Shown in pieces: positions 1 to 27,600 of a stretch of DNA of 64,000 bases. The stretch covers positions 16,430,001-16,494,000 of the forward strand of contig NC_043015.1 of assembly GCF_006345805.1 (NCBI RefSeq), read 5' to 3'. Source of the stretch: Octopus sinensis (Eukaryota). The notes under the pieces are model-generated. The model did no database searches and was not told the DNA's origin. It saw only the letters and a program-made list of their open reading frames with translations. Each line of letters begins with the position of its first letter. Within the stretch, counting starts at the first letter, position 1. The translations under genes and the position numbers were made by a program.

Positions 1-250
1 CCCACATTTGTACTGTTGATAAAACGAGAGCATCATCCCCCATTGTTGCAACCATGGCAGCATGAACGTTGTTGGGGGCTAAACCATTTTTCTCCAGGTA
101 CTTGATAACACCATGATGCCAAATTTAGTCCATTTTCAAGATGTGAGTTTACCTGGAAAGAAACAATACAGGTTGAAATTAATGCATGTAAGATTTCACA
201 GCTCTAGCATCCTTTATAGACAGCCTATGAACTTTTCAGCCTGCTCCCGA
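1..250 (-). mobile_element. 5' end of a mariner transposon, cut by the window edge
   Basis: Reverse complement matches the 5' part of the mariner at 3737-5009; TIR-like gacagcctatgaacttttcagcc at ~220-248. Confidence 0.75.
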
Positions 251-291
251 ACACCTGTCATTGGGTATGATACCTTCCTGTACAACCTGAT

Positions 292-575
292 TAACTAAAT
301 GGATAACTAGGCTATAGCCTAGTTATCCATTTAGTTATCCTTCTCTAACATATTTTAAGTATCTCAGTGATAATTCCTGATGGACCTGGGATTTTCCCTG
401 TCTTTATATCCTTAATTCCCTTATCTATCATAATACTGTGAGTTAGGATAGCTGGGTTATTCTGTTGAGTTCACATCAGAAAGACTCTCTTTCTCCCAGA
501 CAGAAAAAATTGGGCATAAGAAGCATCAGACATAGTGTGCAAGAGAGAATACTGCACTGGTATGGTCATTGATGG
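292..575. mobile_element. Scrambled RTE LINE fragments in both orientations
   Basis: ~330-500 on - reads KTGKIPGPSGIITEILK (cf. KTGKAPGPSGITAEMLK in ORF 12635); ~505-570 on + matches the RTE C-terminal region. Confidence 0.65.
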
Positions 576-602
576 GTTAAATGTAGAATCAGAAAGATGA
601 TT

Positions 603-818
603 GTGGAGGCACATAGTTTAGTGGTTAAGGTGTTGGATTCATGATCATAAGATTATGGTTTTGATTCCTGGACTGGGCAATGCATTGTGTTGTTGAGGAA
701 AACCCTTCATTTTACATTGCTCCAATCTCCTCAGCTAGCATCCTGTGATGAACTGTCATCCCATCTAGGGAAGAATATATATGTGCCAGAGAAACCAGGA
801 AACTGGCCCTATGCTCTT
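603..818 (+). mobile_element. tRNA-derived SINE
   Basis: A-box-like TAGTTTAGTGG and B-box-like GGTTTTGATTCC followed by a non-tRNA body. Confidence 0.6.
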
Positions 819-1124
819 TATGGAGTAATCTGAACTAACTAAGATCATTGTACCAGTATAAATCTTCACCAACTTCCTTGAATTTTTTTATCTAGAATTT
901 TTAATCATATGCATAGGGATCAACTATGGCTTAGTTATTTAACTAGCACTTTGCTTAATCCTACTCTTGTGGTTTTTATTTTGTAAATTGAAACTTTAAA
1001 ATGAATTATATCCAGCCTTTTAATATATCTAATGAATTTCACATAGACTGTTACACATATAACAGATAATTTTGTTGGCCTTCTTTACAATCTCTTGCTT
1101 TAATGAACATGTCCTATTTTCCAG

Positions 1125-1250
1125 GATGTCGTAAAAGTCTTCAAAATCTGTACAAAAACAAAGCAAATTCTCCATGTAAAACAGCCACTCGTGAAATTAA
1201 TCAAGATTGTGATCGCATCCTTGATGCTCCTGACCTTATTGATAATTTTT
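1125..1250 (+). CDS. CDC20: CDC20 exon (first in window)
   Basis: ttttccag| ... |gtgagt; encodes SLQNLYKNK...DRILDAPDLIDNF. Confidence 0.88.
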
Positions 1251-4200
1251 GTGAGTATTCTTTTAACTTCTTTAAAACAAATTTTTGTTAAAATCAGTCA
1301 ATAAGCATTAACAAGTATGGCTTACAAGTTCTGTCATAGAAGGTGCCACTTTGGCAAAGTGTCATCTATTGTGGCCTCACTTCAACCTTGAGAGTGAAAT
1401 TTGGCGTGAAACTCTGTAAGCCCATCAGAATGGCTGTTTTTTTGCTTTTTTTTCTGTGCAGAAAGGAGTATGGAAGAAATAGAAGAAAAGAAGGGATAAA
1501 TATCAGTGGAACAATAAGTGGGAGTGAGTGAGCAAGTGAGCATCATATGTGGTGAGATGAGAAATATGAACAGCTGGATGAGTTTTAAAGTGATTGAGAT
1601 GATGAATGCTGGTGGAAAGATGGACACAAGTATATTGAAGAAGAGGGATCAATACAGTCTCTTATACATAGACCTACTTGAGGGGATTGTGGTAGAGTAA
1701 TGGAGATGGTATGCAGCCAGTTTTTTATAGTTTGCAAGCTTCACAGGAGATCAGTAGGATGCTAAGAAGGGGTTCAAGGGTTGCAAAGTGTAGCAATACA
1801 TTGCCTAAACAGTTGCAATAAATTGTTCAGTCATTCCTTATAGCTTCATAGCGAGGCAAAATTATTTTACAACTATGTATTTTTTTTTTCGTGTAATTAT
1901 CTTCTAGAGCTATTTGTTTTCCTTCACCAGTATTGCTCCAAAGCAATATATTTACAGAACTAACTGATTGTACATAATCTTATAGGTTAATCTCAAATTA
2001 GAAAAATAAAAGGAGCGGTTGTATACTGTCAACTTAACGTGACAGTCCCGTAAAGGGAATCACACCACCGCTATTTAGCCCTAGGAAGCATCAGTGCTTC
2101 CTGTCGGGCTTGACACATTTCCTGTGTCATATATTTGCGAAGGGGAGACAAGCACCCCCACCAGCCAGGTCTGCACCTAGAGACATGCATGTTTCTGAGT
2201 CTTGCTCGTCATCAGTCTAGGGTAGCAAGGCTTGCTAGTTGAAGATGTTTGCCAAGCCCTCACAAATATATATATTTTCAGTGAAATCTATTCACTGATC
2301 ACCAAAATTAGAAATATTAAATTTCTAAATATCTCAGAGAGACATGAGTGGTGGTGAAACGATAGAGCGGTTGTATACTGTCAACTTAACGTGACAGTCC
2401 CGTAAAGGGAATCACACCACCATTATTTAGCCCTAGGAAGCATCAATGCTTGACGGTATACAACCGCTCATATCTCTCTGAGATATTTAGAAATTTAATA
2501 TTTCTAATTTTGGTGATCAGTGAATAGATTTCACTGAAATTTGTGAGGGCTTGGCAAACATCTTCATCTAGCAAGCCTTGCTACCCTAGACTGATGACGA
2601 GCAAGACTCAGAAACATGCATGTCTCTAGGTGCAGGCCCGGCTGGTGGGGGTGCTTGTCTCCCCTTCGCAAATATAAGGAGACAGGAAATGTGTCAAAGC
2701 CGACAGGAAGCGTTGATGCTTCCTAGGGCTAAATAGCGGTGGTGTGATTCCCTTTACGGGACTGTCACGTTGAGTTGACAGTATACAACCACTCTATCGT
2801 TTCACCACCACTCATATCTCTCATATTTAGAAATTTAATATTTCTAAGAAAAATAAAATCTTCTTGTCAAAATTTCCTTTGCTTAAATTTCTTTTAAATT
2901 TTTACCTACAGATTGCAATTTGCTTGATTGGTCTGCAAGAAATGTTTTGTGTGTTGCCTTGGGTCAATCATGTTATCTTTTTGGTGTGGAACAAGATTGT
3001 ATTGATGCACTGCAAAACAATGATGATAGAACTGAAGATAATTATGTTTCTTGTGTAAGCTTCAGTGCTGATGGTAGCTTCATTGGGGTTGGAAATAATT
3101 CAGGAGAACTTCAGGTATGCATGCTTACATTGTACATTGTTTCCCATATCAGGTATATTTTAAATATTACCTGACATGTAACCTGCTTTTTTTATATTTG
3201 TGGATTCTCTAATGTAAAAAATAGGGATTCTTTAGATGTTTTAGCATACAAACACAGATAATTACAGGAAGCAGTTTTAAGATTAAAATATAGAATTCAA
3301 ATTCTTTCTATTTTTCCTATGATTCAATTTGTATAAAATAATGTTAATTAAGAATTTTATCTTTTGCTATAAAGCTGTTGGAAAAGATGTCTTACATTCT
3401 TACCTCATAATCTAAGCATTAACTTTGATACTATATTATGAAGATGAAATTAATCATGTGTATAATGTTGCCCTACCATCCATAGAGTCAACAGTTCATA
3501 TCTTACTTTGTGTCTCTAGTCAAAGCACTTAACTTGCTGTACTTTAAGCCATTTAACTCTAAATAAAACTATAAGATAACTAACATTCACTGCTATAGAC
3601 AGTACATTGTGTACTGTATAATTAACATATATTTTGATTGCTTCTTCAAACATTCCTATAGTTAAAATATGTTGAGAAATTGATCTTTCCAAAATGAGAA
3701 AACTGAAATAAGCATATCACAACTCCTCCTAACAAGATGAGGTAAGTTGAAAAGGTCATAAACTGACTATGAATGAGTGATGCCAGAGCTGTTAAATCTT
3801 GCCTGCATTAATTTCAACTCTTCTTATTAATAACTGCATACAGATAAATTGACTGTTGAAAGAACACTATAGAAGTAACTAGTAGTGATTTCTCTTGAAA
3901 GTAAACAAAATTTGACATCATGATATTATCAAGTACCTGGAGAAAAACTGTTTAGACCCCAACGACATTCATGCTGGCATGGTAACTACATTATGAGATG
4001 ATGTGCCAACTTTATCAACAATGCAAAATTGGACAGCTGAATTTAGGAGGGGAAGGGAGAGTCTTGAACATTACCTGAGGTCTAGATGTTGTGCAATTGC
4101 CACTACCAAGGAGAACATTCTTTGTGTTCACCACATGCTGATGGATGATAGGTGATTGACTATGAATCAAATATCCAATGCTATTGGCATATCCTGTGAG

Positions 4201-7200
4201 AAATTTGAGAATATTTTGCACAATGAACTTGACATGATGATGGTTTCTGCTCGGTGGGTGCCACATCTTCTGACATTTGATCAAAAGTGCACCAGGCTGA
4301 TCACATCATAGGAAAATCTACACTGTTTGAGGCAGTTACAGTTTCTTTGAACATTTCCTAACTCAGGATGAGTGTTGGGTTTATCATTTTGAACCAGAAA
4401 CAAAGAGATAATCCATGTAGTGGAAACACCCCTATTCACCTACTCCAAAGAAGGCCAAGGTGATTTCATCTGCAGGGGAAGGTGATGACCTCAGTTATTT
4501 TGCAATGCAAAAGGCATTGTGTTTATTGACTACCTTCAAATGAGCTACACCTTCAATGGAGAGTACTATGCCAACTTGCTGAAGCAGTTACAAAAGGCTA
4601 TCAAGACCAAATGCCCAAGGAAACTGATGAAATGGGTTTTGTTTCATCAGGACAATGCTTCAGTACACAAGCCTTTGCTTGTAAAGGCAGTTGTGTGTGA
4701 CTGTGGATTTGAATTCGTTGATCACCATCCCTCTTCTCCTGAGTTGGCTCCATCTGACCATTATTTGTTCCTCAACATGAAAAAACACTTGGCTGGGAGG
4801 CAGTATTGTAGTGATGATCATGTCATATCTTCTGTTGAGTGTTTTGACCAACAGTATGATAGCTTTTTCATCAATGGAATCCAAGCACTGCACAGTGATA
4901 GAAGAAGTGTATGGGCCACAATGGGGACTATGTTGAAAAATAATGTCATTTGGTCACATTCTATGAGAGTATCTTGGTCAACCTACAAACTTTTCAGCTA
5001 GCCATTGTAAAAGCTTAATGGAGAAGAATGGTTACAGTTAGAAGTGTAACATAGAAAACCATTGTATACACTTGCAATAGATATGTGTCAAGTCTAGTGA
5101 TTAGTCATACAGTCAACTCTCGCTACTATGCCACCCTGCAGGACTGAGCCAAAGTGGCATAGTACCGAGGGTCTGTTATCTAAACACTACATAACCAAAA
5201 ATTTACTGAACATACAAATAAAAATTCATTGGGTAGGAAGTAAGGCCAATAAGTTCAATGCAATGGTAAAAAGAAGACATCCAAGTTTATTAAGTTCAGA
5301 TTGCTTTTAGTTAATCCCGAAGCTCTCAAAAATTGTCGGCTAACGCATCTTCTTTCGGCGGATTTCATTCATTTCATTGTCTAGCCTATCACACGCCTGC
5401 ATGACGCTGGGTTTTCCGCTGCTCTGCTGCTGCATAAACTTTCAGATAGTGCTCCATGCTCTCTGGGCATCTGCAAACGAAACGTATTCCTCTTCCACAA
5501 TTACCTCGTCGTCTTCACTTTCCACTGGCTCTTCGTTATGCATTACCTCCTTTGCTATTTCTTCTAGAGTGAAAGATCCTCCAGCAATCGTCAGCACTGA
5601 GAAAATCAAACAGCTCAATTGTTTCGTTCTCATGTGTCTTTTCCTCGGGAGGTAAAGCTTTCCAGATCTCGAGCAGCTCAGCATCCTCTGGCCCTATTTG
5701 TATTTCCTCTTCAATAAACTTGGCTTTCGCGAAACAGTTCTTAATCGTCAATTCACTGACCTGCTCCCATGCACGCCAAGCAACGTGCAGAGAGTCGAGC
5801 AATGTAAATTTAAACTCGTTTCCTTCATCCATGGCTTCGAGACGGCGGGACAGCAAGAGCTTTTTGTAATGGTGCTTAAGATTTTGTATGATTCCTTAAT
5901 CCATTGGTTGGGAATTTGCTGTCGTGTTGGGCGGAAAGAAGAGCATTTGGATGTTGTCCAAGTGGACGTCAGAAGGGTGACCAGAGAAGTTATCGAGACA
6001 GAGCAACACTTTGCGGTTTTGCTGCCTGAGTTGTCTGTCCCACGTTTGTAACATTTCTTCAAAAGTTTCTGCTGTCATCCATGCCTTCGAATTAGCCTTG
6101 TACTTCACAGGAATCTATTTGTTCTTAAACGCACGAGGTTGCTTGGAATTTCTGATCACCAGAAGAGGTAGCTTCTCGCTGCCGCTTAAGTTTGCTCCGA
6201 CCAAAAGAGTGATTCTTTGCTTGCTTTTCTTTCCCCCTGTGCACCGCACTCCCCTGAAAGCCATGGTCTTGTTCGGAAGTAGTTGCCAAAAGACTCCTGT
6301 TTCATCCAAGTTGAACACGCTCTTTCACGGAAAACTGCCTGAGCAAGGGCCAGAGAACCTCTTGTTGCCACTTAATAAGAGATTGAGAATTCACCGCTCC
6401 AGCTTCGCCCTGCACTGTCTTGAACGTGATGCCGTGATGATTTTTGAAATTGTCTAGCCAACCGTCGCTTGCCATAAAGTTCAGAATGTGCATAAGCTCA
6501 GCCAGTTTAATTGCTTTCTCCTTCAAAAGATCACCACTGACTGGCAGATTCTGTCCTCTTGCTTGTTTCAGCCACATTAGCACGCCATCATTGAGCTTCG
6601 GGTTGTGAGATTGCGTCAGCTTCATGCACTTCGATGGAATTCCAATGTTGATGGCTGCCTCGATTGCATCCTTTTTGTTGAGAATGCCCTTCACCGTGGT
6701 TCTCTTGACTTCGATGCCCCATTTCTTGCTCATTTCTCTAGCCAGCTTAGACTGGTTCGGCTCGTTTTTCGCAGCATCGATAATCTCCTTCTTTTCCTTC
6801 AGCGTAAACTCAGTCCGCTTGCGTTTCTGAGCTGACATTGTGTGCTACTTTCTGAACTTTTCCACAAGATTACAAAATGTAGGAGTACAAAATTTCGAAA
6901 AGTTGCATGCACTTCAGTTTACAAGTGGCATAGTAGCGAGAGTTGAGATTTTAGCGAGATTTTAGTAAAAATTTTTTGTCTATTATTTGGCCGGTACCGC
7001 GCAAAACTGGCATAGTAGTGAGAGTTGACTGTATTCATATAAATCTTCCTTGTTAATTACAAATTCAAAACCACATTTACATAAATATATACAAGGTGGT
7101 ATCAAAACGTTCCCAGACTAGTTTAGTAGTACACCAACAGATGTGCAGTGAGAGCTAGCAGTGACCTTCATGAGGCAGTGTGCCAAGTGATGTTGTGTTT

Positions 7201-10200
7201 ACTTCACCTGCCCTGTTTGCCAGATATAGTACCTGTGTTCTTCCATCTCTTCTCCAAGATGTAGATGCAGCTTGAAGGTTGCCATTTTAACACTGTTGTC
7301 AAGATCCAGAGTGAATTGTAGAAAGTCATTGACTCACTTATGGAAAACAACTTTCAGGCCATATTCCAAAAGTGACAGGAACGCTGGGACTGGTGTATTG
7401 CTGTGCAAGGCGACTATTTCGAAGGAGAAGATGTTAAAACTTAGGTAAAAATATTTTATTAAACATAATTAGTCTGGGAACCTTTTGATACCACCTTGTA
7501 TTTTATGTAAATAGTTAAAATATAACGAAGTTAAAGATTGAAATAAATTATTTTATGATAAGGTGTTAATAACAGCTTTTTTTTTCTCTTGGATTTATGT
7601 TAATTAGAATATTAATTATTTCAATTTAGCCTTTAAGGTTAGGTTTTATAATTATTATGATTAAAATTTTTATAAGTATTATAGTCTCTTATTTTATTCT
7701 TGATTTATGTTGTATTTAGTATACAATGATGAGTTATTAATTACATTATTAGGTTGATTCCTTTTTTTATTTTCTTAAGGATTAAATTTGTACTTGATTT
7801 ATTTGTTTAATGAAATGTTGTTCTTTGTTAGAAGTTCATTTAATTACTCAGGTATTGAGTGATATTTTTCTTGCCATACATTATACTTAATATATTGAGT
7901 ATTTATTTGATTCACTTATTGATATTATGCAGGATATAAATTATGTTATAAGATAATTAAGTTATATTCATGCAAATGAGACTCCTTTTTTTATTTGTTT
8001 ATTTATCTCTATTGGTTGTGTCATTGCTCAAAGTACATTATTTGTCTAACTCTATTAGAAATTATTGTTCCAGTTGTTCTGAGAACTAATGTATATGTTA
8101 CAATTTATTTAATCCAACTCAGTTATCTATAATCTTTTCTAAAGCACTTTTAATTGTAAATATACAGCATTAAACTGATTCTAACTAATTACATTTACAG
8201 TTCTATATTTAAGAGATGAGAAATTATGTACATTATTTAAATTATTTACATCTGATGGAAATTTGTCCTCATTTTGTTTGTTGTTAACACAATGTTTCAG
8301 CTGATATACCCTCCGGCCTTCATTAAGTGTCTTGGGGAAATTTCAAACCTGAGTTCTCATTCCTAAGGTATTTTTTGATGTTATTATTCTGACTCTTGAA
8401 GTTAGTAGCCTGCGCTCTTAACTACTACGCCATGTGCCCGTGAGCAGTTATGGAGTGAATTTTAGGGCTTATAAATCTAATATTTTCCTATCCTTCCCAT
8501 ATGCTATTCATATCTGCACTCAGTCTGCTTAGGAGGTTGTTGTGCCCTATCATATGTGCTGCTTCTTTTAGTTTTTGTATTTTCCAGTGGTGTTCTCTGT
8601 CTATTATTTTAAATTCATCCCACAGGTGGTCTCCATTTTACCATACATGATCAGCTATACCCGATTTATCAATATCTCCTAGTGTCACAGCTTTGCGATG
8701 TTCCTTTACCTTCATTTTGAGAGGGTGGCATGTTTTGCCTTTGTATAACCTACCACAGCTGTATGGGATGGAGTACACCCAGTTTTTAGTCATATTCTCT
8801 TCTATTGGTGGTTTTACTCGAAGGAGGGTATATCAGCTGAAATGTTGTGTTAACAACAAACAAGGTGAGGACAAATATCTGTCAAATGTAAATAATGTAA
8901 ATACATTTATTTGACTTTTAGAGTGTGTAGCATTGGTTATGACAAAAACCTGATGTCAGTTTATATTCAACATTTATTGCTGCATGTTTATACAAGGCTC
9001 CATGAAAATACAAACAGAATCAATCTTATATGAACATTGTATTTTACAGGTGATGAAGGTCTTCACAGATAATGCTTAAATGGATCTTTAACATCACTGC
9101 AAAATCATTTGGCAGCATTGATTTCTTCATCCATCTCTGAGTTGGTATAGAGCTGTGAAAACAGCTATTAGGGAAATTGTGCTGGTTTGAGTATGAAACT
9201 GGGAAATACTTGAGAGAAGAATTCACCAAAGACCATAACAAATGGTATCCCAATTTTCTCTGGCCTTGTATGCTCAAAACAGCTGTTTACATGGCTGTTA
9301 CCAAAAGAACGTTCTTGAACTTATCACCTGGACAATGAGTTCTGGTTGGTTGAAATTGGGGTCTGCATGCATGATAAACTCGTGATTTACATGCAGTTGG
9401 AAATGAAAGTGAAACCAGCTGCCATATTAGCCCCCTTTCCAGTCAAATTTGTAGGGTTAACAAAAGAGACAAAAAATATAATACTCTTCAGCTTGCCTGA
9501 ATTAGTCTTACTCTGCTACATTTTAATTACTATATAGCTTTTATGAGGTTCAATGGCTTTAATATTAAGGTGCTGTACCAATGATAACATAGCATGAATT
9601 TCTATCTGACAATCTTCACTTTGCTCCACTGAGCAAGGTACCTTACTCAAATGATACCAATTTGCTAGTATAAAAGAAAATTTAAAAAGCAGGTTCTACA
9701 TATACTTTATGATTGAGAAATTAGAAGGAAAAAGTGGAATTCTCTGACAGAAGTCATCCCACTTATGCAAACATTGAAACATGTATATAAAGTTGTAAGG
9801 AAATTTATTCATTCTCTATACATCTCATTTAAGGATATTTTACACATGTAAAAATACATCATGTTTTTCTTTTTTTTTTCTCTTTTGCAAGATATGGGAT
9901 ACAAAAACCAAGAAACTACTCCGTACAATGTATGGAGCAGGAACTTCAGCACATACACTCTCTTGGAATGCTAATGTTCTTAGCTGGTGAGTTAGTTTCT
10001 TTGGTTTAACTCCTCCTTGTTAATTACAATGAACTAAAGCAATAAGTTTTAACCTTGATTGTATTTCAGTACAATGTCCACATGGGTTAACTCATTAAAA
10101 ACTGCACAAGACATGTCTACTAAATATTAGATTAAATATTTAAATAAATCAATTGACCTTATTTTATTTCTAAATACTTAGCCAAGAATAAACCATTGTA

Positions 10201-13200
10201 CTTGACATCTGTTGATGTAGAGAAAGCCTTCAATAAAGTACCCCCACTATGTGATATGGTGGGCTCTGAGGAAGCAAGGAGTAGACGAGTGGCTTGTGAA
10301 AGCTGTACAGGCCATATACAGGGGTGCTGTAAGTATAGTGAGAGTTAACAAGTACAGTGAAGAATTTGGTGTACAGGCAGGTGTTCATCAAGGCTGTCCT
10401 CAGTCCCTTACTTTCCATCATTGTCCTCCAGGACTTACCAGAAGAATTCAACACTGGCAGCTCCTGCGAACTACTATATGCTGACAATCTTGCCCTCATA
10501 GACTCTATATTAGAGCCAGAAAAGGAATTCCAGGTGTGGAAGTAAAACCTGGAATCTAAGGGTCTTAAGGTTAACTAAGCAATGACTAAGATCTTAGTAA
10601 GCAAGAAAACAGACATGCTCCTATCTCCTTCAGGTAAGTGGCCCTGCTCAATTTGTGGGAAATGTATAGGCAGGAATTTCATCTTCCAAATCCCTCACGA
10701 AGAAATACGCACAGATCATGAACAGTTAAAGTTAAGAAATTCTTCTTTCAACCTCGCTTGCCTCTACCTTCTATCTTTGCATGTATCATCTTTATTCTTT
10801 CATTATTCTTCGATTACTCTCTCATTATATTGTTCTTTCAGTACTCTCTCATTATATTATTCTTTCAGTACTCTCTCACTATATTTTTCTTTCAGTATTC
10901 TCTCATTACTCTGTCTAGCTCAGTAACATGCCATTCATGTAAATTATTCTTTCAGTATTCTCTCATTACTCTGTCTAGCTCAAATATGTTTTTTGTTTAG
11001 TCTTGTCTCCCTGTTGCTCCCGGTTCATAGCCACTTATCTTTCCCCTAAAAATCTCACTTTCTCAGATTTTTCAAACCTACTTTCTTGCTCCCATGATTA
11101 ACAGAACCTCTTCCTAGTTTATGGTGCACCCGCCTTCCCACCCCCTCCACACATGCCGGAAGTTCCTATTCTTTGCCATCCCGGGGTTGCTTCCCATGAA
11201 GACTGCAAATGCTCTTTCACCATCCCTACCCCTAGTCTCGACCTATGTAAGGTAATGTTCATACAGTGCAAAATATGAAAGGCTAGTGTTATGCAGGTTG
11301 AACTGAAGGCTACTGTATTACTTGCACATGAATTCTGCCAAATGCGAGCTTTCTTTTCAGGTACATGAAGCTACTGTCCACCGTCCCAGGGTCTCTAGGG
11401 CCCATACCTCCCACACCCCCAGGGTTGGCACCCTCAACGTTGGCACACTGAAAGGTAGGTCTGGCGAGATAGTCGAGATGCTTGAACGGAGATGTGTGGA
11501 TATATGTTGCATGCAAGAAGTAAGGTGGAGAGGAGGATCTGCTAGGTTCCTCACAGGCAAGGAACACAGGTACAAGATTTTCTGGGCAGGGAACACTGAC
11601 GGGGTTGGTGGCATGGGTATCGCTGAGAAATGGGTAGATAAAGTAATTGAGGTAATCAGAGTATGTGACAGAATACTTAAGATCAGATTAGTGCTTCATC
11701 ATAGTTTAGCAACCATTATATTGGCGTATGCTCCTCAGTCGGGGCTACCTGATGGACAGAAAGACTGATTCTACGACACTCTACTTGCAGACTACCTCAT
11801 TGACGAACGACAGAGACCTTCTCTTTGTGGCTGGTGACTTCAATGGTCACGTTGGACAACATGCTGGGGGCTTCCATGGCGTACATGGAGGCTATGGCTA
11901 TGGTTCCCGCAACGAGGAGGGAACCAGGCTGCTGGAGTTCTGCGATGCAAATAATCTTATGATTTGCAACACTAACTTCAGGAAACCTACCAGCCACCTA
12001 GTCACCTACCAATCGGGCCAACATACCAGCCAAATTGACTACATCCTTGCCAGGCAAAGGGAGAGATGGCTGCTTATAAATGCCAAAACCTTCCCAGGCG
12101 AAGAATGTACCCCACAACATAGACTGGTAGTTAGTGACTTTAGGATCAGGACTAGGAGGACAACCAGAAGTCGACCAACATGGAGAAGAAGGATCTGGAA
12201 GCTTAAAGATCCTGCGAATGGACAGAGATTTAGGGACATGCTACTTGAAGCCTTTGACGAAGTAGAAGGGGATAGAGTATCACATGGGGTAGAAGGCAAC
12301 TGGACGTTTCTAAGGGACAACCTGCTGAGAGCCATTGACCAGATCTGTGGATGGTGCAAAGTCCCCTCTCGTCCCAAGGTAACGTGGTGGTGGAACAGTG
12401 TTGTAGACAGGGCTATTAGAGAAAAGAGACAGACTTGGAAGAATGGTGGTAGCAGGGAATTGTATCAGACTGTCAAAAGGGAAGCTAGGAGACAGGTCTA
12501 TCTAGCCAGAGGGGAAGCAGATAAGAAAAAATTTGCCAATGTTCTGCGCCGTGAGGACCAAAGACTGGAGGTTTTTCGCGTTGCAAGACAGTGTGTGAGA
12601 GAGAATTGTGATGTGGTAGGAGAGGTGTGTTCGCATGGAAGATGGTTCACTTGCGCTAAATGAGGATGCAAAGAGAGAGGTTTGGAGACGCCACTATGAA
12701 AGGTTGCTGAATAAAGAAAATGAATGGGATAAAGAGAGTCTGCCGAATGTTGACCCAACAGAGGGACCAGCTATCCAAGTTGACAGTTCCTTGGTAGTTA
12801 AGGCAATTAGAAGCATGAAGACAGGGAAAGCCCCAGGCCCATCAGGAATCACTGCAGAGATGCTCAAAATATCTGGTAGTGTCGGCTATAGCTTAGTCAC
12901 CCGTATAGTTAATCAGGTGATACACGAAGGAGTCATACCCAATGACTGGTGTAGCAGCATAATAGTCAACTGCTACAAAGGTAAAGGTGACGCCCTAGAT
13001 ACAAATACTTACAGAGGTATCAAGCTGTTGGATCAGGTAATGAAGGTTACGGAGAGGGTCATAGCCCAACTAATTAGAGAGAGAGTTAGTTTAGATGAGA
13101 TGCAGTTTGGGTTTGTGCCAGGGAAAAGTACCACTGATGCTATATTCCTGGTAAGGCAGCTGCAGGAGAAATACCTAGCCAAAGATAAGCCCCTGTACCT

Positions 13201-16200
13201 GGCTTTTGTTGACATGGAGAAAGCCTTCGACAGGGTCTCCCGATCCCTTATCTGGTGGTCAATGAGGAAACTAGGGATAGATGAATGGTTAGTGAGAGCT
13301 GTGCGAGCCATGTACAGGGACGCTGCTAGTAAGGTGAGGGTTGGCAACAGTACAGTGAAGAATTCCGGGTAGAGGTAGGGGTCCACCAAGGCTCAGTCCT
13401 CAGCCCCCTCCTATTTATCATAGTCCTCCAGGCAATAACGGAGGAATTCAAGACAGGATGCCCTTGGGAGCTCCTCTATGCTGATGACCTTGCTCTAATT
13501 GCTGAGTCACTATCAGAACTGGAGGAAAAGTTTCAGGTGTGGAAGCAAGGATTAGAATCGAAGGGCCTTAGAGTCAATCTAGCTAAAACCAAAGTCCTAA
13601 TAAGTAGAAAGGTAGACAAATCACAAACGCCTTCAGGTAGATGGCCCTGCTCAATCTGTAGAAAAGGTGTAGGTAGAAACTCTATAAGATGCACCAAGTG
13701 TAAGCTATGGACACATAAGAGGTGCAGCAATGTCAAAGGAAGGCTAACTAGGAAGATGGTTTTTGTATGTGGCAGATGCTCAGGAACAATAAACACTGAA
13801 AATGCTCTGAGACCAACTTCTGTCACTTTCCAGGGAGAAAAACTAGAAATAGTTGATAGCTTCCGTTACCTAGGTGACCAAGTCAGCAGCGGGGGTGGGT
13901 GTGCTGAAAGTGTAACTGCTAGACAAAGAATAGCTTGGGCAAAATTCAGAGAGCTCTTACCTCTGCTGGTGACAAAAGGCCTCTCACTCAGAGTAAAAGG
14001 CAGACTGTATGACGCGTGTGTACGAACAGCCATGCTACATGGCAGTGAAACATGGGCCGTGACTGCTGAGGATATGCGTAAGCTTGCAAGAAATGAAGCC
14101 AGTATGCTCCGATGGATGTGTAATGTCAGTATTCATACTCGACAGAGTGTAAGTACCTTGAGAGAAAAGCTAGACCTAAGAAGCATCAGATGTGGTGTGC
14201 AAGAGAAACGTTTGCGCTGGTATGGACATGTGGCAAGAATGGATGAAGATAGTTGTGTGAAAAAGTGCTACACCCTACCAGTTGAGGGAACCTGTGGAAG
14301 AGGCAGACCCAGGAAAACCTGGGACGAGGTGGTGAAGCACGACCTTCGAACTTTAGGTCTCACTGAGGAAATGACTAGAGACCGAGACCCTTGGAAGTAT
14401 GCTGTGCGTGAGAAGACCCGGCAGGACAAGTGAGACCATAACCCGTGGCCTACATGGGATGTAGCCAGCCCACTTATGCATACCTTCCCTTCTTGGGACA
14501 CAAAACTCTACTTGTGAAGACCTGTTGAGGCAAGTGAGAATCAGAATCGAAATCGATCAATGGAAATTGCAGCTGAGTTACCAGTGCCTGTGGCATGTAA
14601 GAGAACCATACGAACGTGGCCGTTGCCAGCGCCGCCCCGACTGGCCTCGTGCCGGTGGCACATAAAAAGCATCATCCGTTCGTGGCCATTGCCAGCCTCG
14701 CCTGGCCCCTGTGCCGGTGGCACATAAAAAGCACCATCCGATCGTGGCTGTTTGCCAGACTCGTCTGGTACCTGTGCCAGTGGCACATAAAAAGCACCCA
14801 CTACACTCATGGAGTGGTTGGCATTAGGAAGGGCATCCAGCCATAGAAACATTGCCAGATCAAACTGGGCCTGGTGCAGCCTTCTGTCTTCCCAGACCTC
14901 AGTTGAATCGTCCAACCCATGCTAGCATGGAAAGTGGACGCTAAACGATGATGATGATGATATACACAGTGTAAGCTATGGACACGCAAGTGCATTGGAA
15001 TAATAGGAAGGTTATCAGAGAAAGTAATATTTGTATATGGAAGATGCACAGGATCCATAAAAACTACATATATTCAGAAAATCAATTTTCTCAAATGCCC
15101 TAGAGGCTCTTTAGAGGTATTGGATAATTTCTGCTACCTAGTGGACCAAATTATTAGGTTATCTGGAAAGTTCTGAGCACTTTTTAATATACAAATAGGA
15201 ATATAAATAATTAACCTTTCAATAAATTTTATTCAATGAAATAATTTTCATTATTATTAATGACCTTTGCATATCTTTCAGGTAATTTAAATATTCCATC
15301 AGCATAAAATTTGACTGGTTTGAAGAAAAAAAGTTATCTAGATGCATTTTGACTCCATCTCAATCATTAAATGTTTTTCCTTGAAATGGGTTCTGTAGAG
15401 ACAAAAACAAGTGGTAGTTGGATGGTGCAATATCAGGAAAATATAATGGATGGAGTAAGAGGTCCCAGCCAAGTTCATGTAACTTTGTTCGGGTAGCCAA
15501 AATACATGTGGTTGGGCATTGTCTTGTTGGAACACTACCCCTTTCCTGTTGGCAATCTGCAGCCTCAATTCTCTGATTTTTTTTTTTGGGGGTTCAAATT
15601 AGCCAGTCAACGACAGTACACATCAGAATTAATGATCTGGTTTTGTGAGAGAAGCTCATAATAAATAATACCTTTGTGATCCCACCAAACACAAAGCATA
15701 GCTTTTCTGACATGGATATTCATCTTTGGTTTCTGTTTTGGGGGATCCTTATGCAAACTCCAGGATCTTTTTAGCACTAGGCTTTCATAAACAATCCATT
15801 TTTCATCTCCAGTCACAACTTGTTTCAAAAAAGGCATGCTTTCATTCCATTTCAACAGTATATCAGAAACGGAATACCGGTCCAAGCAATTCTTTTCTGA
15901 GAGTTTGTAAGAGACCCATGCATTATAACGAGAAATGTATCCTAGCTGTACTTTTAGAAAAATCAAACTCCTCTGTAAGTTCTCCAGTCATGATATTTGA
16001 GTTTTTTTTTATTTTTGCCTTCAAAACATCTTCATCCAATTTTGAAGGTCTTCTACTGTGACTATCATCTTCCAAGCTGAACTCTCCAGCTTTAAATTTT
16101 GCAAACCACCTTTGAACAGTTGATTCACCTACAGCATCATCACCATGAACTTCACAAATGTTTTGGCATGTCTTTGCAGCATTTTCTCCCGTTTTACAAA

Positions 16201-19200
16201 AGAAAAGCATTGTTAGGTGAATATGAAACTTTTGGTTATCCATTTCAATTGTAACCAGAATGAAAGAAAAATCTATTTTTAGTCAGGAGCAAAGAAGAGA
16301 TGCACTACCACTTCAAATAATGCCATACTTTTAACTCTGTTACATTACAGGTGTGTTCAAAGATTTGTTAAGAAATGTTAAAAGATTTAGCTTTAAAATG
16401 TTCAGAACTCTTCAGACAACAAAATAGTGGAAGGGGAGGATGTACAGAGAGTGTAATAACTAGAATAAGAATAGGGAGAAGAAAATCAGAGAGCTTTTTT
16501 CTCTGTTGCCAACCAAAGGTTTCTCTCTCTGAGTGAAAGGAAGGTTGTATGATGCATGCATATGAACAGCAATTCTACATGGAAATGAGATGTGGTCCCT
16601 GCATGCAGAGGACATGCAAAGGCTAGTATACTCCACTGGATGAGTAATGTACATGTATGACAGAGTGTGAATGTATTGAGAGAGAAGTTAGGCATAAGAG
16701 GAATTAGATGTAGTGTGTAAGAGAGAAACCTGCACTGGTTTGGTCATGTGATGCAGATGGATGCCGACAACTCCATAAACAAGTGCCATTCACTCAAAAT
16801 GGACAGAACTCGTGGAAGAGGGAGATCCAGGGTGGCATGGCACAAAGTACTGAATGATGACCTCAGAATGCTGAACCTTTCAGACAAGATGACAAAGGAC
16901 TGAGATATCTGATGCCTCAAGAAGACCTATGCTCCACTCAGAAGTGTTAAGGCTGCATCCCCTGGTGAAGAGGATTGGCTTCCAAAAGTCCTGTGATGGT
17001 GCCATGTAAAAATGCACTTGTGCCAGTGCCACATAAATGCACTCATGTTAGTGGCACATTAAGAGCTCCTGCCGCATACTGTAAAGTATTTGACATTAGG
17101 AAGGGCATCCAGTCATAGAAACCAAGCCAAATTAGACTGGAACTATGTGCAGCTTGCCAGCTCTGATCAAACTGTCCAACCCATACCAGCATTGAAAAAA
17201 TACATTAAAGGATGATGATGAAATCTTTCAAAAATGATGGCTATTTACTTTTGAGACATCTGTGTGTGCGTGTGTACATTTGTTCATTCATTTGGTGCAT
17301 GTTTTTTATGCTTGCATGTGGTTTGGATGGGAAGTTATTTGAAATGGCATTTTACAGCCAATACTTTTTCTGTTGCTAACAAGGATTTTTATTTCCAGAG
17401 GTTTCAAAATAGATGATGTCATAATGTCAACATGAAATGCCAACATCATCACCACTTAATTGAAATATCAGTATTCATGCATATTTGTACATGTACACAC
17501 ACACACACACTCACACAATGTGCTTTCTGCAGTTTCCATCTACCAAATTTTCTCACAACTCATTCATCTTCTATCATGCAGTGGGATCAAATTGGAAATT
17601 ACGTGCTTAAGAAGCACACTTCTTCACCACACAGTTATGCTTGCACCTAAACACACACACATGTATATATGTTTACATACACATACAGTCCAGCATATGA
17701 TAAATGTACTTTAATTTATTTTTCTAGTGGTACTAATGATGGCACAATATATCATCATGATATCCGACTTTCTGATCACGTGATCAGTACCTTCTCTGCT
17801 CATACAAGTATTGTTTGTGGCTTGAAATGGTCAGGTAATGGTCGCTATTTGGCCAGTGGAGGCAATGATAACATTGTGAATATTTGGGATTTTAATCGTA
17901 GTGTCTCCATTCAGCCATTATTAACGTTAACACGTCATAGAGCTGCTGTCAAGGTAAGATATATTTAATTACTGTCCCTTGAGTAGTTTTTAAATAGAAC
18001 TTAGAGGAAACATATGTTGACAGTATTTTTGTATAATTACAATGCAAAAAATAATTAGATAAGCAATCACACTAAAACTCCTTAAGGAGAACATGTTTTT
18101 CAGAAAGGATGACAAGGGACTGAGACTGGCAGTTTGCTGTGCTTGAGAAGACACATCAAGCTAAGTAAAATCATGATTGTCCTTGCATACAGGCAAATCT
18201 CCTACATCCCTCTTCAGCTGAGCAGTCTTAATCTTGTGGGCTCATGGTTGCTGGTGCCACATAAAAGTACCCATGCCAGTGCTGCATAAAAGCACCCAAT
18301 ACACTCTGTAAAGTGGTTGGCATTAGGAAGAGCATCCAGCCATAGAAACCATGCCAAAACAGACATGGAGCACAAGCAGCCCTTCAGCTGGCCAACTCCT
18401 GTCAAACTGTCCAACCCATTACAGCATGGAAAGTGGATGTTAAATGATGATGATGACAGAAATGTATTTGAGTAATCTAAATCCAATGAGAAAGAATAGC
18501 TTATTAGTAAGTAATATGATGAGATAGTTGTTGATGATTGTATAAAATGTGTAATTATTTAAACTACTTTGAGAATGATGTACATGTTCATATAAAATAT
18601 ACACGTCCTACTATTTGACTAACCAAAGCTTTTTATATTAAACTACAGTTTTGACTGAAGAGAATAGAAAACAACTATTTTTGGTTTACAGAAAATGCAT
18701 TTAAAAATAGATGTGTACAGCAAAACTACTCATTCTACTACAAGAGTTCACCTGTTTTCATTAGTCATATACATTGAAAGATTGTTGTACCATCAATTGA
18801 TGTAGTATGCTTTGAACAATCTTAATACTACAACACATTAACTTTTAAGCCATTGTCTGTTTTGATTGTTATCTTTTACTTGTTTCAATCATTAGACTGC
18901 TGCCATACTGGGGCACTGCTTTGAAGTGTTTAGTCCAGGGGTTGCCAAACTTTTTCAACCATCGACCCCCTTTAGCCACTTCTCCTTCCGAATCGACTCC
19001 CTTTTGTCACTTCTCAGTCTACATTGACCCCCTTTAGCCACTTCTCCTTCTGAATCGACTCCCTTTTGTCACTTCTCATTCTACATTGACCCCCTTTAGC
19101 CACTTCTCCTTTTGCATTGACCACCCTCCTCATTTAAAATACCTTAATACCTTACCCTACCGTACCATATCTTAAATGCATACCAGATAATGATGCTGCC

Positions 19201-22200: not shown

Positions 22201-24587
22201 ATTCTCACTCAAATGAATTACATTAAAAACAGTGATAAATTTAGACTAAAGAGAAATTATTGTTTTGTCAGCATGTTTAATAGATATCACATTAAGATAT
22301 TCTTCAGTCATCATTCTACCTGTAATTATCTTTAAGTAGTCCCCTGCTCTAAACTCCTTTGTATGACAGTTGTTAGAAATAGCTGGTCCTTTTCATGATA
22401 TCAAGCAGCTGTTTCAGGTATAGAGTTTACTATTTCAATGCTACTTGATTTTAACATCATAATAAAGTTCAGTAAATACAGCACTTACTATTAAAATACT
22501 GGGCAACAATATTTTAAAGCGTTTAATTTTTAAAAGAATACTATTTATATTTCAAAGAAAAACCAGCAGAACTATTACTATGATATATCTATGATAAAAA
22601 TGATCATCTTTCCAAACAAATGTAGATGAAAATTTTAATAAAGATTTCAATGCAACTGTGTCATTGTCTTAAACCTACTTAGTTTGATTTAGTAAATATC
22701 AGTGATACCAGTAATATTATTAGTGATTAACATTTCTGTTATTTGACATAGGGATTGGCTTTCTCATTAATGTTATTTGGAGCCTAAACAGACTAGCAAA
22801 GTCCAAAGCAATCATATTTTTGGCAGAGCTTGTGTGTGGGTCTGTTATTTGTTGCAGCAAATAAAGGCTATTTTATTATTATAATCTTAATTATGATATT
22901 TATAATGTCTGTTTATAGAAAATTATCTCAATTTCTGTGTCTTAATTTTGAAACCTAATCTTGAGCTCTAACTGTGAACACAGTTACAAGTTCATCCTAA
23001 TTTTGAATTGTATTCCAAGAGAGCAGCATCTCAATGAAAAATGGTAAGAAATGATAAAAAATTGGTTAACAGTTCTAAAGCTGTATGTGAAGCTGATGGG
23101 CAGCCATCATAAAACAATGTTGTGTTAATGCAAGTTCAAATTCAAATAGAAAAAATGTACTTGTCAACCAAATCCCAGCCTTTGATAATCTACTCTAACA
23201 CATTTAACTAGATTCATTACTATTATTGAAGGCCAAGCTCATCCTAATACTCAACTGTATGTAGTAATATTTGGAATATCCATTTTTACTTTCCTTTTTA
23301 TTTATTTATTATAGGCTTTGAGCTGGTGTCCTTGGCAAGATTCTATACTTGCCAGTGGTGGAGGATCTAAAGACAAAACAATCCATATATGGAGTATACC
23401 ATCAGGAAAATGTGTCAACTCTAAACTAACACATTCACAGGTTATTGCATTACTGTTACTTCTTTCTTTGTTTTCTGTAATTCTAGAAATTTCTGTAGCA
23501 TTTAATGGAGATGTTAATATTCAGCTGTCATTTGAAAGAAAAAGAAATGTTTGTGTTTCGATGTTGCCTTGGCAAACATTGGAAAATGGAACATGCATTT
23601 TATACAATTTCTTTATTTTTTTAACCAAACCTTTTTCTGTTACCTACTACTATCCTGTGTTGCTGGATTATTCATTTTGTTAAAATAAGTAGAGAAATAC
23701 AACTTAATGCAAGTAATGTTTGAACTCCTGAATAGTTCCTTAACAATGGACACAAATGTCACTGAGGGGTTAAGGTGAGATCCTGTTTCAGTCCTACTGC
23801 ATAGTATTTTCAATAAATGTTTTTTAACATAGTCTTGAGTGGATCCAAGCCTATGAGTGAAATGGGCAGGGATAGAAAATATGAGGAAGCCTGTTGGATG
23901 GACTGTACCAGTGATTCAAAGAGTCAGCATTGTCACACACTGTCATAGAGTGGATTCCACTTGAGAATTATGTGAAGGGTACAACTGTCTGTGAAATATT
24001 TAGCCACTAACACGTTACTTAATGAATAAATAGTAGAGTTGATAAAACAACTGAAACAATCGTTGCCAAAATTGACAAATGCTCCATTTCAACCTTATAA
24101 ATATTATGTGTGTGTAATAAGCAAAAGAAAATAATACTCAACACATTTAGTTGGACATTATTTACATTTGACAGATATTTGTCCTCATCTTGTTTGTTAA
24201 CATGTTTCGGCTGATATCCAGCCTTCATCAGGTGTCTTGGGGAAATTTCAAACCTGGATTCTCATTCCTGAGGTATTTTTCGATGGATTCTCATTCCTAA
24301 GGTATTTTCTGCAAGACATTTGATGAAGACTGGAAGATATATCAGCCAAAACGTTGTGTTAACAACAAACAAGATGAGGACAAATATTCGTCAAATGTAA
24401 ATTATGTACATAATTCTTCATCTCTTAAATATAGAACTACATTTAGTTGGAGATCTGTATATTTAATAACATATTGACTCAGCTCCACATTACTTAAAGT
24501 TAAATGGGCATAATATACAAAACATTAAGTATTGTGGAGCAGAGTCATTGCTAATAATGTACATGCAAACACACACACACACATTAC

Positions 24588-24636
<49 letters not shown>

Positions 24637-27600
24637 ATAATATTAGGGAGTAAATCCAAACTTACAGGGAAAAATTAGATTTAGGATTAAATCCAATTTT
24701 ATAGTATAAATATATATTATATTAAATTGGAGATAAAACCACTATTAGGCAAATCAAACAGTGAAAACCATAAGCCAATACATAGAAAAAATATATATAT
24801 ATATTTAAAATTTATAAGTTTAAATTATTTAAATAATTTTTAAAATTTTAACTTTAATTTAAATATTTTAATTTGGAATTTTATATTTTATATTTTTTAT
24901 ATTTATATTTTATATTTTTTAATTAATTTTTTTCTATGTATTGGCTTATGATTTTCACTATTTGATTTGCCTAATAGTGGTTTTATCTCTAATTTAATAT
25001 AATATATATATATTATTAAAGTAATAAAGTTAGTGTTTGGTCATAGAGTGACCACAAACTTATAGCCAGGGATGATAACAGTACTGACAGCAGTACTGGT
25101 GGCAATAACAGCATCCCCAGGCCTGGAGCCAACCGAAAATGCACCAGTAATGTGAATACAACCGACACCCAAACCTGGAAATATATCAGGTCAGCCAGGA
25201 CAGTGTTCAAGTGATGTCTGTACAGCCACAGGTCCTCCTTCAGAAAGATGATTCGTCACATACCTGGCCAGCTATGTGTGGTGCCTCAAAGATGAAAGGA
25301 CCCCATACAATATCAAGTGCAAGATCTTAGAATGGCCAGGACCCTACACCAACAGGAGTGTATGCTTAAAGTTGAGTAAGCTAGGATTCTCAAAGATCCC
25401 TGAAACCTGGGTCACTGAATGCTCACCAAGAAATCTTCACACCATGCATCAATTTCAAGTGCTACCTGCTGCAAGCATGGGATTCTCAGTTTGCTGACTA
25501 AGTCAGGAAGATTCCTTACAATCCAATACCAGCCCGAGGGATAAATCCTTTGGTCCCCCACTCCCCTGGCCCACAAATAGCTGATCTAGGGGAGATAACC
25601 CGTCCTCAGTAATATTGGACTATTTATTCTTTGATGACTCAATGACATTAACAGATTTCTGCCTCCCAGAAGTGAAGAGTTAAATTTGTCTTCAGATTAG
25701 AGTCTGATGAGCCATCTGCAAATCTACAGCCTTTGTGGATGCAAAACCATTGGTCACTCTATGACCATACATTAACTTTATTACTTTACTGCTCTATACT
25801 TTAGAGTGTGCTTCTTTTTGGATATATGATACATTGATGATATATATACGTATATAATAAACAAAAACATATGGATATTTAAATATTACTACATGCTTTT
25901 CCATACTATAGTTTAATTCAAGCCAAATTCTTTACATAATAAGATAACATTACATGAATTTGTATTGTTATCCACCGATAGTGATAACATGGGGTCAAAG
26001 TTTTATAGAATAATAAACCAAATTTTTTGCTTATAAGATAAGTTACCCTAGGGATAATAGCGCAATTTTTCTTGAGAGTTCATATTGAAAAAAGAGATTG
26101 CAATTTTGATGCTGGTTTAAAATAACCTTAAGGTATAGCGCTTTATTAGGTAAATCTGTTTGATTTTTAAAATTTTACCTGATCTGAGCTCAAACCAGTG
26201 AAAACTAGGTTGGTTTTTATCTTTTATATTGTTGTTTTTTTATTTAATTTAGTACAAAAGGATTGATTATAATTAATTGTGGGCAATTGATTTTTATAAA
26301 TTTATAATATAAAGTTGGCAGAAAGTATGTGAATAATTTAGGATTATTTTATATTAAGATGGCAGAATAGTGTGAAGGATTTAAGATCTTTCTATGGAAA
26401 TTTTATATATTTTCTGTTAATAATGTTTCTTGAGTTAATTTTGTATGTGGTAGTGTGTATTTGTGTGTTATTCGTGGTTGCTTTTTTTACATTGTTCAAA
26501 CAGAAATAATTAAGGTATTTTCAATTGCAAAAAGATCCTAATAAGGTTGTTTTGATAGGGCTTCCTCTCTCTTTGTCAAATGTAATTAAAACCTATATAG
26601 GCACAAGATGTGTCTGAAAGAGCAGCAACTCCAAATAAGAACTGACTCAAATTGTGATGATCCATCCAACACATACCACCTGGGAACAAAACTGATGTAA
26701 AAGAATGATGGTGGTGGTGGGGAGGAGGAGAATTATTTTATCTGAAACTTTTTTTTTCTCTCTTTCAGATCACTTCATTAATATGGTCAAACGAACACCA
26801 TGAAATTGTTTCTGGACATGGATATTCAAATTATTCTCTCTCTTTCTGGAAATATCCTTCTTTGGAAAGTGTTGGAGAATTGAAAGGTAATTAAAACTTA
26901 AAAGATTTTCCAATTTCAGATCTAGATGAATATTAATGGCAGTATTTCGTTTTTACAATCTGTCTTCCATACCAGTGCTGTTTACACAATCAATTGGTCT
27001 TCTATATAAAAAAAAAATAATCCCTTGATACCATTTTAATATTTTTGCTATCACTTTTATATCAGACCATCTGCATAGAAAACTTTTAAGAGCTGGTACT
27101 GTCTGGTAGTCATGAGTACACACTGTGTTGATTCTTTGACAATCTTCTTAAAATGCTACTCTAACATTTTCAATATTTGCTGTATAAACTTTGCTGCATT
27201 ATTGTAGAGTTTTTGAAATTCTCACTGTTGGTTATGTTTACTTTCAGTCCATTAAGCTATATTTTGCTAAAGTATGAAGGTCAGCTGAAAAGTTCATAGG
27301 CTGAGTCCCCCTTGCAGTCCGCACCCTTCTTCCAACGGTGTTGCAGTGCTTGGATCCTGTTGGTCCAAAAAGTCATCAACAGCAGATATGACACGATCAT
27401 CACTGATATACTGGTTTCCAGTCAACTGTTTTTTCATGTTAAGGAACAGATGATAGTCAGATGGGGCCAAACCAGGAGAATAGGGAGGCTGATCAGCCAG
27501 TTCAAAGCCACAGTCCTGCACAGCAGCCATTGGAAACAAGTACTTGTATACTGGAGCATCATCCTGATGAAACAAGACCCCTTTTGTCAGCTTTCCTAGG

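Follow-up and report, generated by a model that had tools for sequence, protein, structure and literature searches.

The stretch analysed here, referred to as the window, comprises 64,000 nucleotides of Octopus sinensis DNA (RefSeq assembly GCF_006345805.1, contig NC_043015.1, positions 16,430,001 to 16,494,000 of the forward strand). Near its start it carries a gene of the CDC20 family on the plus strand, one intron of which (1251-2911) was found to hold an 834-bp palindromic insertion (2013-2846) with one copy of a hammerhead ribozyme-like motif in each arm. The original prediction had placed the plus-strand motif in a CDC20 pre-mRNA, where a long hairpin next to the splice acceptor might mask it, and had proposed that two competing folds tune the splicing or the output of a cell-cycle gene. 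Our results revealed a single insertion event whose product resembles the retrozymes of other invertebrates in its sequence and the insertions of Penelope-like elements (PLEs) in its geometry, and which probably has been decaying since as a passenger of the intron.

The insertion was flanked on both sides by the same 12-mer, AGAAAAATAAAA, and the orthologue in O. bimaculoides, otherwise intact, did not have the element. In the three-way alignment, AGAAAAATAAAA(G) occurred only once in O. bimaculoides (L001, the locus of this species, 43310-43322); the intron aligned up to window position 2012 and resumed at 2847, and the two alignments overlapped by 13 bp. Checked against this empty site, the target-site duplication (TSD) is 12-13 bp long. 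The independent chromosome-level assembly of O. vulgaris showed the same insertion at the same site with 99% identity, and in O. sinensis chromosome CM016877.1 it was 100% identical, as was the whole of window 1-4000. The TSD, the empty site and the insertion shared with O. vulgaris together indicate that 2013-2846 arose in one event, and the comparison of the three species dates this event to the time between the divergence of O. bimaculoides and that of O. vulgaris from O. sinensis, that is, to the common ancestor of the latter two. Assemblies are known to go wrong at complex PLE insertions (10.1101/2021.04.23.441226), and a falsely collapsed or inverted repeat was considered for this reason. 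Such an artefact is hardly credible, because the same palindrome recurs at the same site in two species that were assembled independently and that differ in details of their own, and a precise TSD with a matching empty site argues against it as well.

The arms of the insertion were joined head-to-head. Between 2013-2355 and 2460-2794, complementarity reached 93% in an alignment of 344 columns and rose to 98% in the 138 nt that surround the motif, which bore out the near-perfect complementarity that had been predicted for the left arm. Both arms were built from a 352-nt unit, of which each contained a little more than one copy (Table 1). In the left arm the unit was revealed by a direct repeat (2013-2099 and 2365-2451, 97% identity, spacing 352); its inner 5' end lies at unit position 1 and its 3' end, at unit position 87, points outward. 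The 3' end of the right arm points outward too, and the 5' truncation points of the two arms, which differ (unit positions 1 and 68), meet in the centre, with a TT microhomology at the junction (2450-2451). In the minimum free energy (MFE) structure, an inner stem at the apex (2365-2384 with 2450-2469) enclosed a 65-nt loop. The unit itself was non-coding and AT-rich, with a G+C (GC) content of 42.9%. Folded as a circular monomer it reached an MFE of -130.4 kcal/mol, against -84.5 ± 5.1 for shuffles (z = -8.9), and helix I of the motif extended into a long rod in this structure. No tRNA-like sequence was found by ARAGORN in 1900-2950, and an origin of the 352-nt unit from a tRNA-derived short interspersed element was rejected on this ground.

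The motif is a 46-mer, CCTAGA-CTGATGA-CGAGCAAGACTCA-GAAAC-ATGCATGTC-TCTAGG, which occurred exactly twice in the window, once on each strand, where shuffles gave an expectation of 0; the two copies are identical and are not independent of each other. For the looser pattern CTGATGA-N4-30-GAAAC, four matches were found in the window (0.4 expected), two of which were the 46-mer sites. A relaxed descriptor of the type-I hammerhead (perfect 5-bp helix I, CUGAUGA, helix II of at least 3 bp, GAAA, A15.1...U16.1 and H17) matched these two sites only, in the window and in 105 kb of other octopod DNA (the O. bimaculoides and Argonauta loci), and gave no match in 300 dinucleotide shuffles of the window. 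The exact pair, the uniqueness of the descriptor matches in octopod DNA and the empty shuffles indicate that the motif is real and goes beyond chance. In the sense copy, the core boxes CUGAUGA (positions 3-9, at 2591-2597) and GAAA (positions 12-15.1, at 2611-2614) were in the correct order and spacing. Helix I is open, being formed by the 5' and 3' ends of the motif (CCUAGA/UCUAGG, 6 bp). Helix III is a 10-nt palindrome, ACA[UGCA]UGU, with A15.1-U16.1, in the geometry of a coral retrozyme ribozyme, and the cleavage triplet is GUC, which fits NUH and predicts a cut at 2624/2625.

The hammerhead predicted at 2585-2630 thus stood in its core boxes, its helices I and III and its GUC; what it lacked was a match in Rfam (see below) and the G10.1-C11.1 pair. 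This pair closes helix II and is highly conserved in hammerheads (PMC4209133). Here, helix II consisted of a C·A mismatch at 10.1/11.1 followed by GAG/CUC with the loop CAAGA, leaving only three Watson-Crick pairs. The hammerhead fold alone had -5.2 kcal/mol, against -11.1 kcal/mol for an alternative local fold, and formation of a dimeric ribozyme is precluded by the single copy on either strand. The segment from CUGAUGA to GAAAC measured 13 nt. Coral and mussel retrozyme ribozymes have the same 13-nt segment, and in them GAAAC is likewise followed by a palindrome and then GUC (supplement of PMC7229834); this agreement identifies the layout as that of an invertebrate retrozyme hammerhead and not as the 'minimal' PLE type. 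The register of the minimal PLE hammerhead, with a bulge after A9 and then G10.1-C11.1, was tried and rejected: it needs an extra A before G12, which equals the C·A mismatch, so this register does not rescue the motif. Judged from its sequence, the motif is probably an impaired copy of a retrozyme ribozyme, and we refer to it as hammerhead-like.

The two other CTGATGA...GAAAC matches of the window, at 24204 (-) and 47752 (-), lacked helix I, lay outside the 352-nt element and were set aside. The one at 47752-47770 (-), CTGATGAAGTTGCTGAAAC, has both core boxes with unconvincing helices, and is probably a chance match. The other belongs to a second, unrelated hammerhead-like motif, ACAC-CTGATGA-A-GGCTGG...CAGCC-GAAAC, which was found in the window at 24204-24231 (-), in L014 at 12118-12161 (+) and in L013 at 12125-12168 (+). 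Following A9 there is a bulged A, 10.1/11.1 is a G-C pair and helix II measures 5-6 bp; all of these are published traits of the 'minimal' PLE hammerhead. It sits in a repeat of ~150 bp that is present in two introns of the same gene and that also holds a B-box-like stretch (GGTTCGAA), where ARAGORN reported no tRNA. The upstream copies of this motif passed the relaxed descriptor with a 4-bp helix I, and the window copy was without helix I.

Folding of the RNA 1995-2911 gave one hairpin, in which 2013-2355 was paired to 2460-2794 (MFE -662 kcal/mol, z = -65), that is, a predicted intramolecular duplex of ~343 bp. The right-hand tail of the element (2795-2847) stayed unpaired in this structure, and the duplex therefore ends at ~2794, ~115 nt before the acceptor. 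The distance of ~65 nt given in the original prediction holds for the end of the insertion (64 nt) but not for the end of the duplex. All 46 nt of the sense motif were paired with 2176-2221 in the MFE structure of the full insertion. In a nascent transcript ending at 2640 they were already paired in this way, and forcing the hammerhead fold in its context cost +86.7 kcal/mol. Because the complementary arm is transcribed first, the motif is fully paired and the forced fold is costly, the expectation that the hairpin would mask the sense hammerhead is strongly supported by the modelled structures, in which the upstream inverted arm masks it completely. Long intramolecular duplexes are the kind of RNA that ADARs act on, and A-to-I editing is extensive in coleoids. 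Editing of the predicted hairpin is plausible; if true, this would be one more ordinary ADAR-substrate hairpin among the many expected in coleoid transcriptomes. A footprint of ADAR in the DNA, i.e., an excess of A/G differences between the arms, was looked for and rejected: the differences were mostly CpG transitions, for which reason we read them as ordinary DNA decay.

Comparison of O. sinensis with O. vulgaris revealed six substitutions, a 1-nt indel and a 19-nt indel in the insertion. The substitution rate of the insertion (6/834, 0.72%) was ~3 times that of the collinear locus (81/33,191, 0.24%; Fisher p = 0.016). None of the six substitutions was compensatory, either for the hairpin or in the helices of the motif, and one of them, A2600T in O. 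vulgaris, breaks the pair A10.3-U11.3 in helix II of the sense hammerhead. It is possible that the raised rate in the palindrome was caused by its CpG content, by hairpin-associated mutagenesis or by conversion between the arms. The 19 nt (ACCGCTCTATCGTTCCACC) were kept in O. vulgaris and lost in O. sinensis after 2462, in the right arm, between ACCGCTC direct repeats, which looks like a slippage deletion that took place after the insertion. At 2636 and 2639, the right arm of O. vulgaris agrees with the left arm and that of O. sinensis differs. In the comparison of O. sinensis, O. vulgaris and O. bimaculoides there was no indication of constraint or domestication. O. bimaculoides has an insertion of its own in the same intron, ~0.9 kb long (L001 41868-42793, equivalent to window ~1443-1479, beside a poly-T run). 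Neither an inverted or tandem structure nor a hammerhead motif was seen in it, and it is unrelated to the palindrome; from this separate insertion it follows that the intron tolerates insertions.

The exons of the host gene were mapped by tblastn with a human CDC20 sequence, which served as a probe only. Seven exons were found on the plus strand (1125-1250, 2912-3114, 9892-9986, 17728-17953, 23315-23440, 26769-26886 and 29952-30109), all intact and with AG/GT boundaries, the last one ending in ...SSIR and a stop. The translation of exon 2912-3114 is a CDC20/Fizzy WD40 segment, whose best matches in the PDB were Schizosaccharomyces pombe Slp1 (8e-9) and human CDC20 (1e-7), with FZR1 at 4e-4. 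The model of seven exons (349 aa) matched human CDC20 at 2e-101 and FZR1 at 5e-73, and was 100% identical to residues 211-559 of the annotated protein (CAI9736487.1 in O. vulgaris, XP_029648383.1 in O. sinensis), which retains the C-box (DRFIPQR) and the IR tail. This protein was 49% identical to the canonical Octopus CDC20, compared with 94% to its orthologue in O. bimaculoides and 62% to that in Argonauta, and both orthologues adjoin a STAG (cohesin) gene. On these identities, the host is a divergent, octopod-specific paralogue and not the canonical CDC20, so that of the predicted CDC20 intron the gene family and the intron 1251-2911 were right and the identity of the gene was not. The sense motif does belong to the pre-mRNA of this gene, and its predicted cut lies 287 nt upstream of exon 2912, in agreement with the ~290 nt proposed. 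The annotated proteins of both carrier species join 1250 to 2912 normally.

Table 1. Features of the palindromic insertion and its host intron (positions in the window; MFE, minimum free energy structure).
Feature	Position	Strand	Basis
Upstream exon (...DRILDAPDLIDNF)	1125-1250	+	tblastn, splice sites, 100% match to annotated protein
Host intron, phase 1 (GTGAGT...CAG); would measure ~815 nt if the insertion were absent	1251-2911	+	exon mapping
Target-site duplication, left copy, AGAAAAATAAAA	2000-2011		identical 12-mer at both junctions
Left arm, 1.25 units: 87-nt partial repeat (2013-2099) and full 352-nt unit (2100-2451)	2013-2451	-	direct repeat, unit alignment
Left-arm copy of the hammerhead-like motif (antisense to the gene), predicted cut 2182/2181	2176-2221	-	exact 46-mer, descriptor match
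Palindrome apex, junction of the two 5'-truncated arms	2356-2459		inverted repeat, MFE
Right arm, ~1.2 units: from unit position 68 (2450) through the unit end to ~140 (2847)	2450-2847	+	unit alignment
Hammerhead-like motif, sense (pre-mRNA) copy	2585-2630	+	exact 46-mer, descriptor match
53-nt 'tail', right end only, unpaired in MFE	2795-2847	+	unit alignment, MFE
Target-site duplication, right copy, AGAAAAATAAAA	2847-2858		identical 12-mer at both junctions
Downstream exon (YCNLLDWSARNVL...GELQ), first WD40 blade region	2912-3114	+	homology, splice sites, annotated protein

Metazoan retrozymes of the non-long terminal repeat (non-LTR) kind are 170-400 nt long, self-paired and below 45-50% in GC, with type-I hammerheads and TSDs of more than 4 bp (Cervera and de la Peña 2020, PMC7229834). 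The octopus element is similar to them in its 352-nt, non-coding, self-paired unit of 43% GC, its TSD of more than 4 bp and the layout of its motif (6-bp helix I, 13-nt helix II segment, GAAAC followed by a 10-nt palindrome and GUC). It differs from them in that each arm comprises only ~1.2 units and each strand a single ribozyme, in arms that are arranged head-to-head instead of in tandem arrays, in the C·A at 10.1/11.1 where they have G-C, and in that no further family member was found in the ~170 kb sampled. Retrozymes have been proposed to be non-autonomous derivatives of PLEs (PMC7229834), and this was recently argued on phylogenetic grounds (10.64898/2026.07.22.740005). PLE insertions are built as partial tandems, often beside an inverted 5'-truncated copy, and show a tail of 30-40 bp on one side and a TSD of variable length (10.1101/2021.04.23.441226), and PLE hammerheads come in pairs, on opposite strands, 100-700 bp apart (PMC4209133). 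The insertion described here has a partial tandem, an adjacent inverted and 5'-truncated copy, a one-sided tail and a TSD of 12-13 bp, and its two hammerhead motifs lie a few hundred bp from each other, one per strand. Its ribozyme is different from those of PLEs in that it has the canonical retrozyme layout and not the 'minimal' one (no long helix II). Furthermore, a purified PLE enzyme was shown to nick and extend both target strands from two internal start sites on the RNA, the tail being the sequence between them (PMC11167929). A mechanism with two nicked and extended strands and two internal starts of reverse transcription predicts exactly the geometry of this locus.

Taking these lines together, we consider it probable that the locus is a lineage-specific, non-autonomous, retrozyme-like insertion which was made by a PLE-type mechanism and has remained a neutral, decaying passenger. 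The reverse transcriptase (RT) and GIY-YIG endonuclease (EN) of a PLE would have made one nick in each strand of the intron, staggered by 12-13 bp, and each 3'-OH would have primed reverse transcription on a multimeric or circular RNA of the element, at two internal start sites (unit positions 87 and ~140). Each cDNA would have extended slightly past one unit, and the two 5'-truncated copies would then have been joined head-to-head at 2450/2451, giving an 834-bp palindrome with a 12-bp duplication on its flanks and a 53-nt tail on one side. When transcribed, the arms would zip into the ~343-bp duplex, burying the sense hammerhead and looping the insertion out of the intron, and we infer that the insertion has been neutral for splicing. 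The hammerhead would already have been impaired by the C·A at 10.1/11.1, and with no sign of host use it may be seen as a passenger which is tolerated and decays. The hairpin would then be a by-product of the mode of insertion, not a device set beside the acceptor. The narrower claim, that the locus is a datable 'fossil' of the mobilisation of a retrozyme by a Penelope-like enzyme which primed on both nicked strands, is put forward tentatively, with slightly more doubt than confidence.

Several results weigh against this interpretation. In the retrozyme and PLE literature compared, the only PLE clade documented in Octopus was Naiad, which is without hammerheads. Retrozymes are defined by at least two hammerheads in a head-to-tail tandem, which allow a monomer to be excised, and the arms here contained 1.2-1.25 units with one ribozyme each. 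The tail measured 53 nt, against the published 30-40 nt. Rfam returned no hammerhead match for the motif, neither at the gathering score over the whole window nor at E<=10 on 1051 nt or 86 nt; its matches to EF0408_EF0409 sRNA, U4 and tsr33 were dismissed as spurious and caused by the palindrome. A second independent copy of the 352-nt unit was absent from ~170 kb of octopod sequence, made up of the 64-kb window outside the insertion, another 35 kb on its upstream side from O. sinensis and O. vulgaris, and the O. bimaculoides and Argonauta loci. Finally, among the transposon open reading frames (ORFs) scanned in the window, which were of the LINE (long interspersed element), mariner and pogo kinds, there was no PLE ORF, that is, no RT/EN frame at or near the locus. 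These transposon remnants lie in the large introns of the gene: a LINE with AP-endonuclease and RT domains in broken frames (11307-14430, +), a mariner-type transposase fragment (4489-4998, +) and a pogo/Tc5-type element with HTH_Tnp_Tc5, CENP-B_N and DDE_1 domains (5539-6844, -).

The search for relatives was extended to other collections. The spurious ORFs of the element found no family member in a collection of 5.8 billion proteins, and the 34-nt core had no exact match in the metagenome contigs scanned. A gapped scan of the metagenome contigs (CTGATGA-N8-20-GAAACATGCATGTC) hit 10 loci, all of them in prokaryotic-looking coding sequence without helix I, and these were rejected as chance matches because of the missing helix I and a recurring Cys-x-x-Cys-His codon pattern. 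As an observation apart, CTGATGA-N-GAAACATGCATGTC recurred in such coding sequence on contigs L003-L006, L008 and L011, where GAAACATGCATGTCGTGCCAC encodes ...ETCMSCH, a motif like the haem-binding CxxCH; strings of the hammerhead core can thus arise within genes.

Long inverted arms and a TSD are also the classical signature of foldback elements, and a foldback or MITE-like (miniature inverted-repeat) DNA transposon with long terminal inverted repeats, not a retroelement, would account for both. It is nevertheless improbable, for the two outer ends do not mirror each other: they lie at unit position 87 on the left and ~140 on the right, and the 53-nt tail of the right end has no inverted partner at the left end. 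Each arm is, moreover, a partial tandem of more than one unit, with inner truncation points that differ, a TSD of 12-13 bp is long for most cut-and-paste families, and the unit resembles a retrozyme in its properties and carries a hammerhead motif. The hairpin could also be a source of small RNAs, either endo-siRNAs cut by Dicer or precursors of piRNAs (PIWI-interacting RNAs), that silence the element family, in which case the host would tolerate or mildly favour it. A near-perfect predicted duplex of ~343 bp is indeed transcribed with the host gene, and hairpin-RNA loci are known to yield endo-siRNAs in other invertebrates. We regard this as quite improbable, since there was no sign of selection for the duplex: compensatory changes were 0/6, and the rate of substitution was elevated.

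The regulatory role put forward in the original prediction, a switch between the sense hammerhead and the hairpin, perhaps shifted by ADAR, that would modulate how the intron is cleaved, how the nearby acceptor is used or how much the gene produces, starts from features that are present. The motif is on the sense strand, not far from the exon, the insertion ends close to the acceptor, the long duplex is a robust feature of the predicted fold, and the extent of coleoid editing is well established. However, this role was not supported by our results, and we judge it very improbable. The hammerhead fold is disfavoured by the +86.7 kcal/mol given above and the motif is fully paired before transcription has passed 2640; it has the C·A mismatch, no Rfam match and one copy per strand. 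In O. vulgaris A2600T has broken helix II, and the element as a whole has been substituted three times as fast as its locus. Furthermore, O. bimaculoides lives without the element, and the annotated proteins of the two carrier species splice normally over the intron. Less credible still is a domesticated hammerhead with a role in mRNA biogenesis. Such domestications of retroelement ribozymes have been documented in the introns of amniote RECK, CTCL and DTNB (PMC6155905), and the octopus motif is similar to these in being a type-I-like, retroelement-derived motif on the sense strand of an intron in a protein gene. The amniote motifs, unlike the octopus one, are ultraconserved and free-standing. 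The octopus motif is recent, still within its intact transposon and TSD, defective at 10.1/11.1 and sequestered in a duplex; conservation at the orthologous site fails, as the site is empty in the congener O. bimaculoides and helix II is mutated in the sister species O. vulgaris. Domestication therefore appears largely refuted by the comparative data. Inverted pairs of Alu elements in introns are substrates of ADAR, and they are a further likeness of the octopus insertion, whose two inverted retroelement copies are likewise predicted to form a long intramolecular dsRNA in a pre-mRNA. It is different from them in that its two arms came from a single insertion event, not from two independent ones.

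For this locus, the reading is corrected accordingly: the hairpin on the acceptor side appears to be the footprint of one transposition and not a regulatory element, and the hammerhead a decaying passenger kept inactive by that hairpin. The locus also suggests that an intron can accommodate a palindromic insertion as close as ~60 nt to its splice acceptor, where the original geometry of the intron stays almost unchanged because the palindrome folds back on itself. Its value lies in being a well-resolved case, with an exact empty site, a TSD, dating from two species, a tail and an inverted copy. It links a retrozyme-like hammerhead repeat to a PLE insertion signature in a cephalopod, and descriptions of elements of this sort from cephalopods are scarce. 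If the same two 3' ends (unit positions 87 and ~140) and frequent head-to-head copies recurred across the genome, this would amount to structural support, from a mollusc, for the use of the PLE integration pathway by animal retrozymes.

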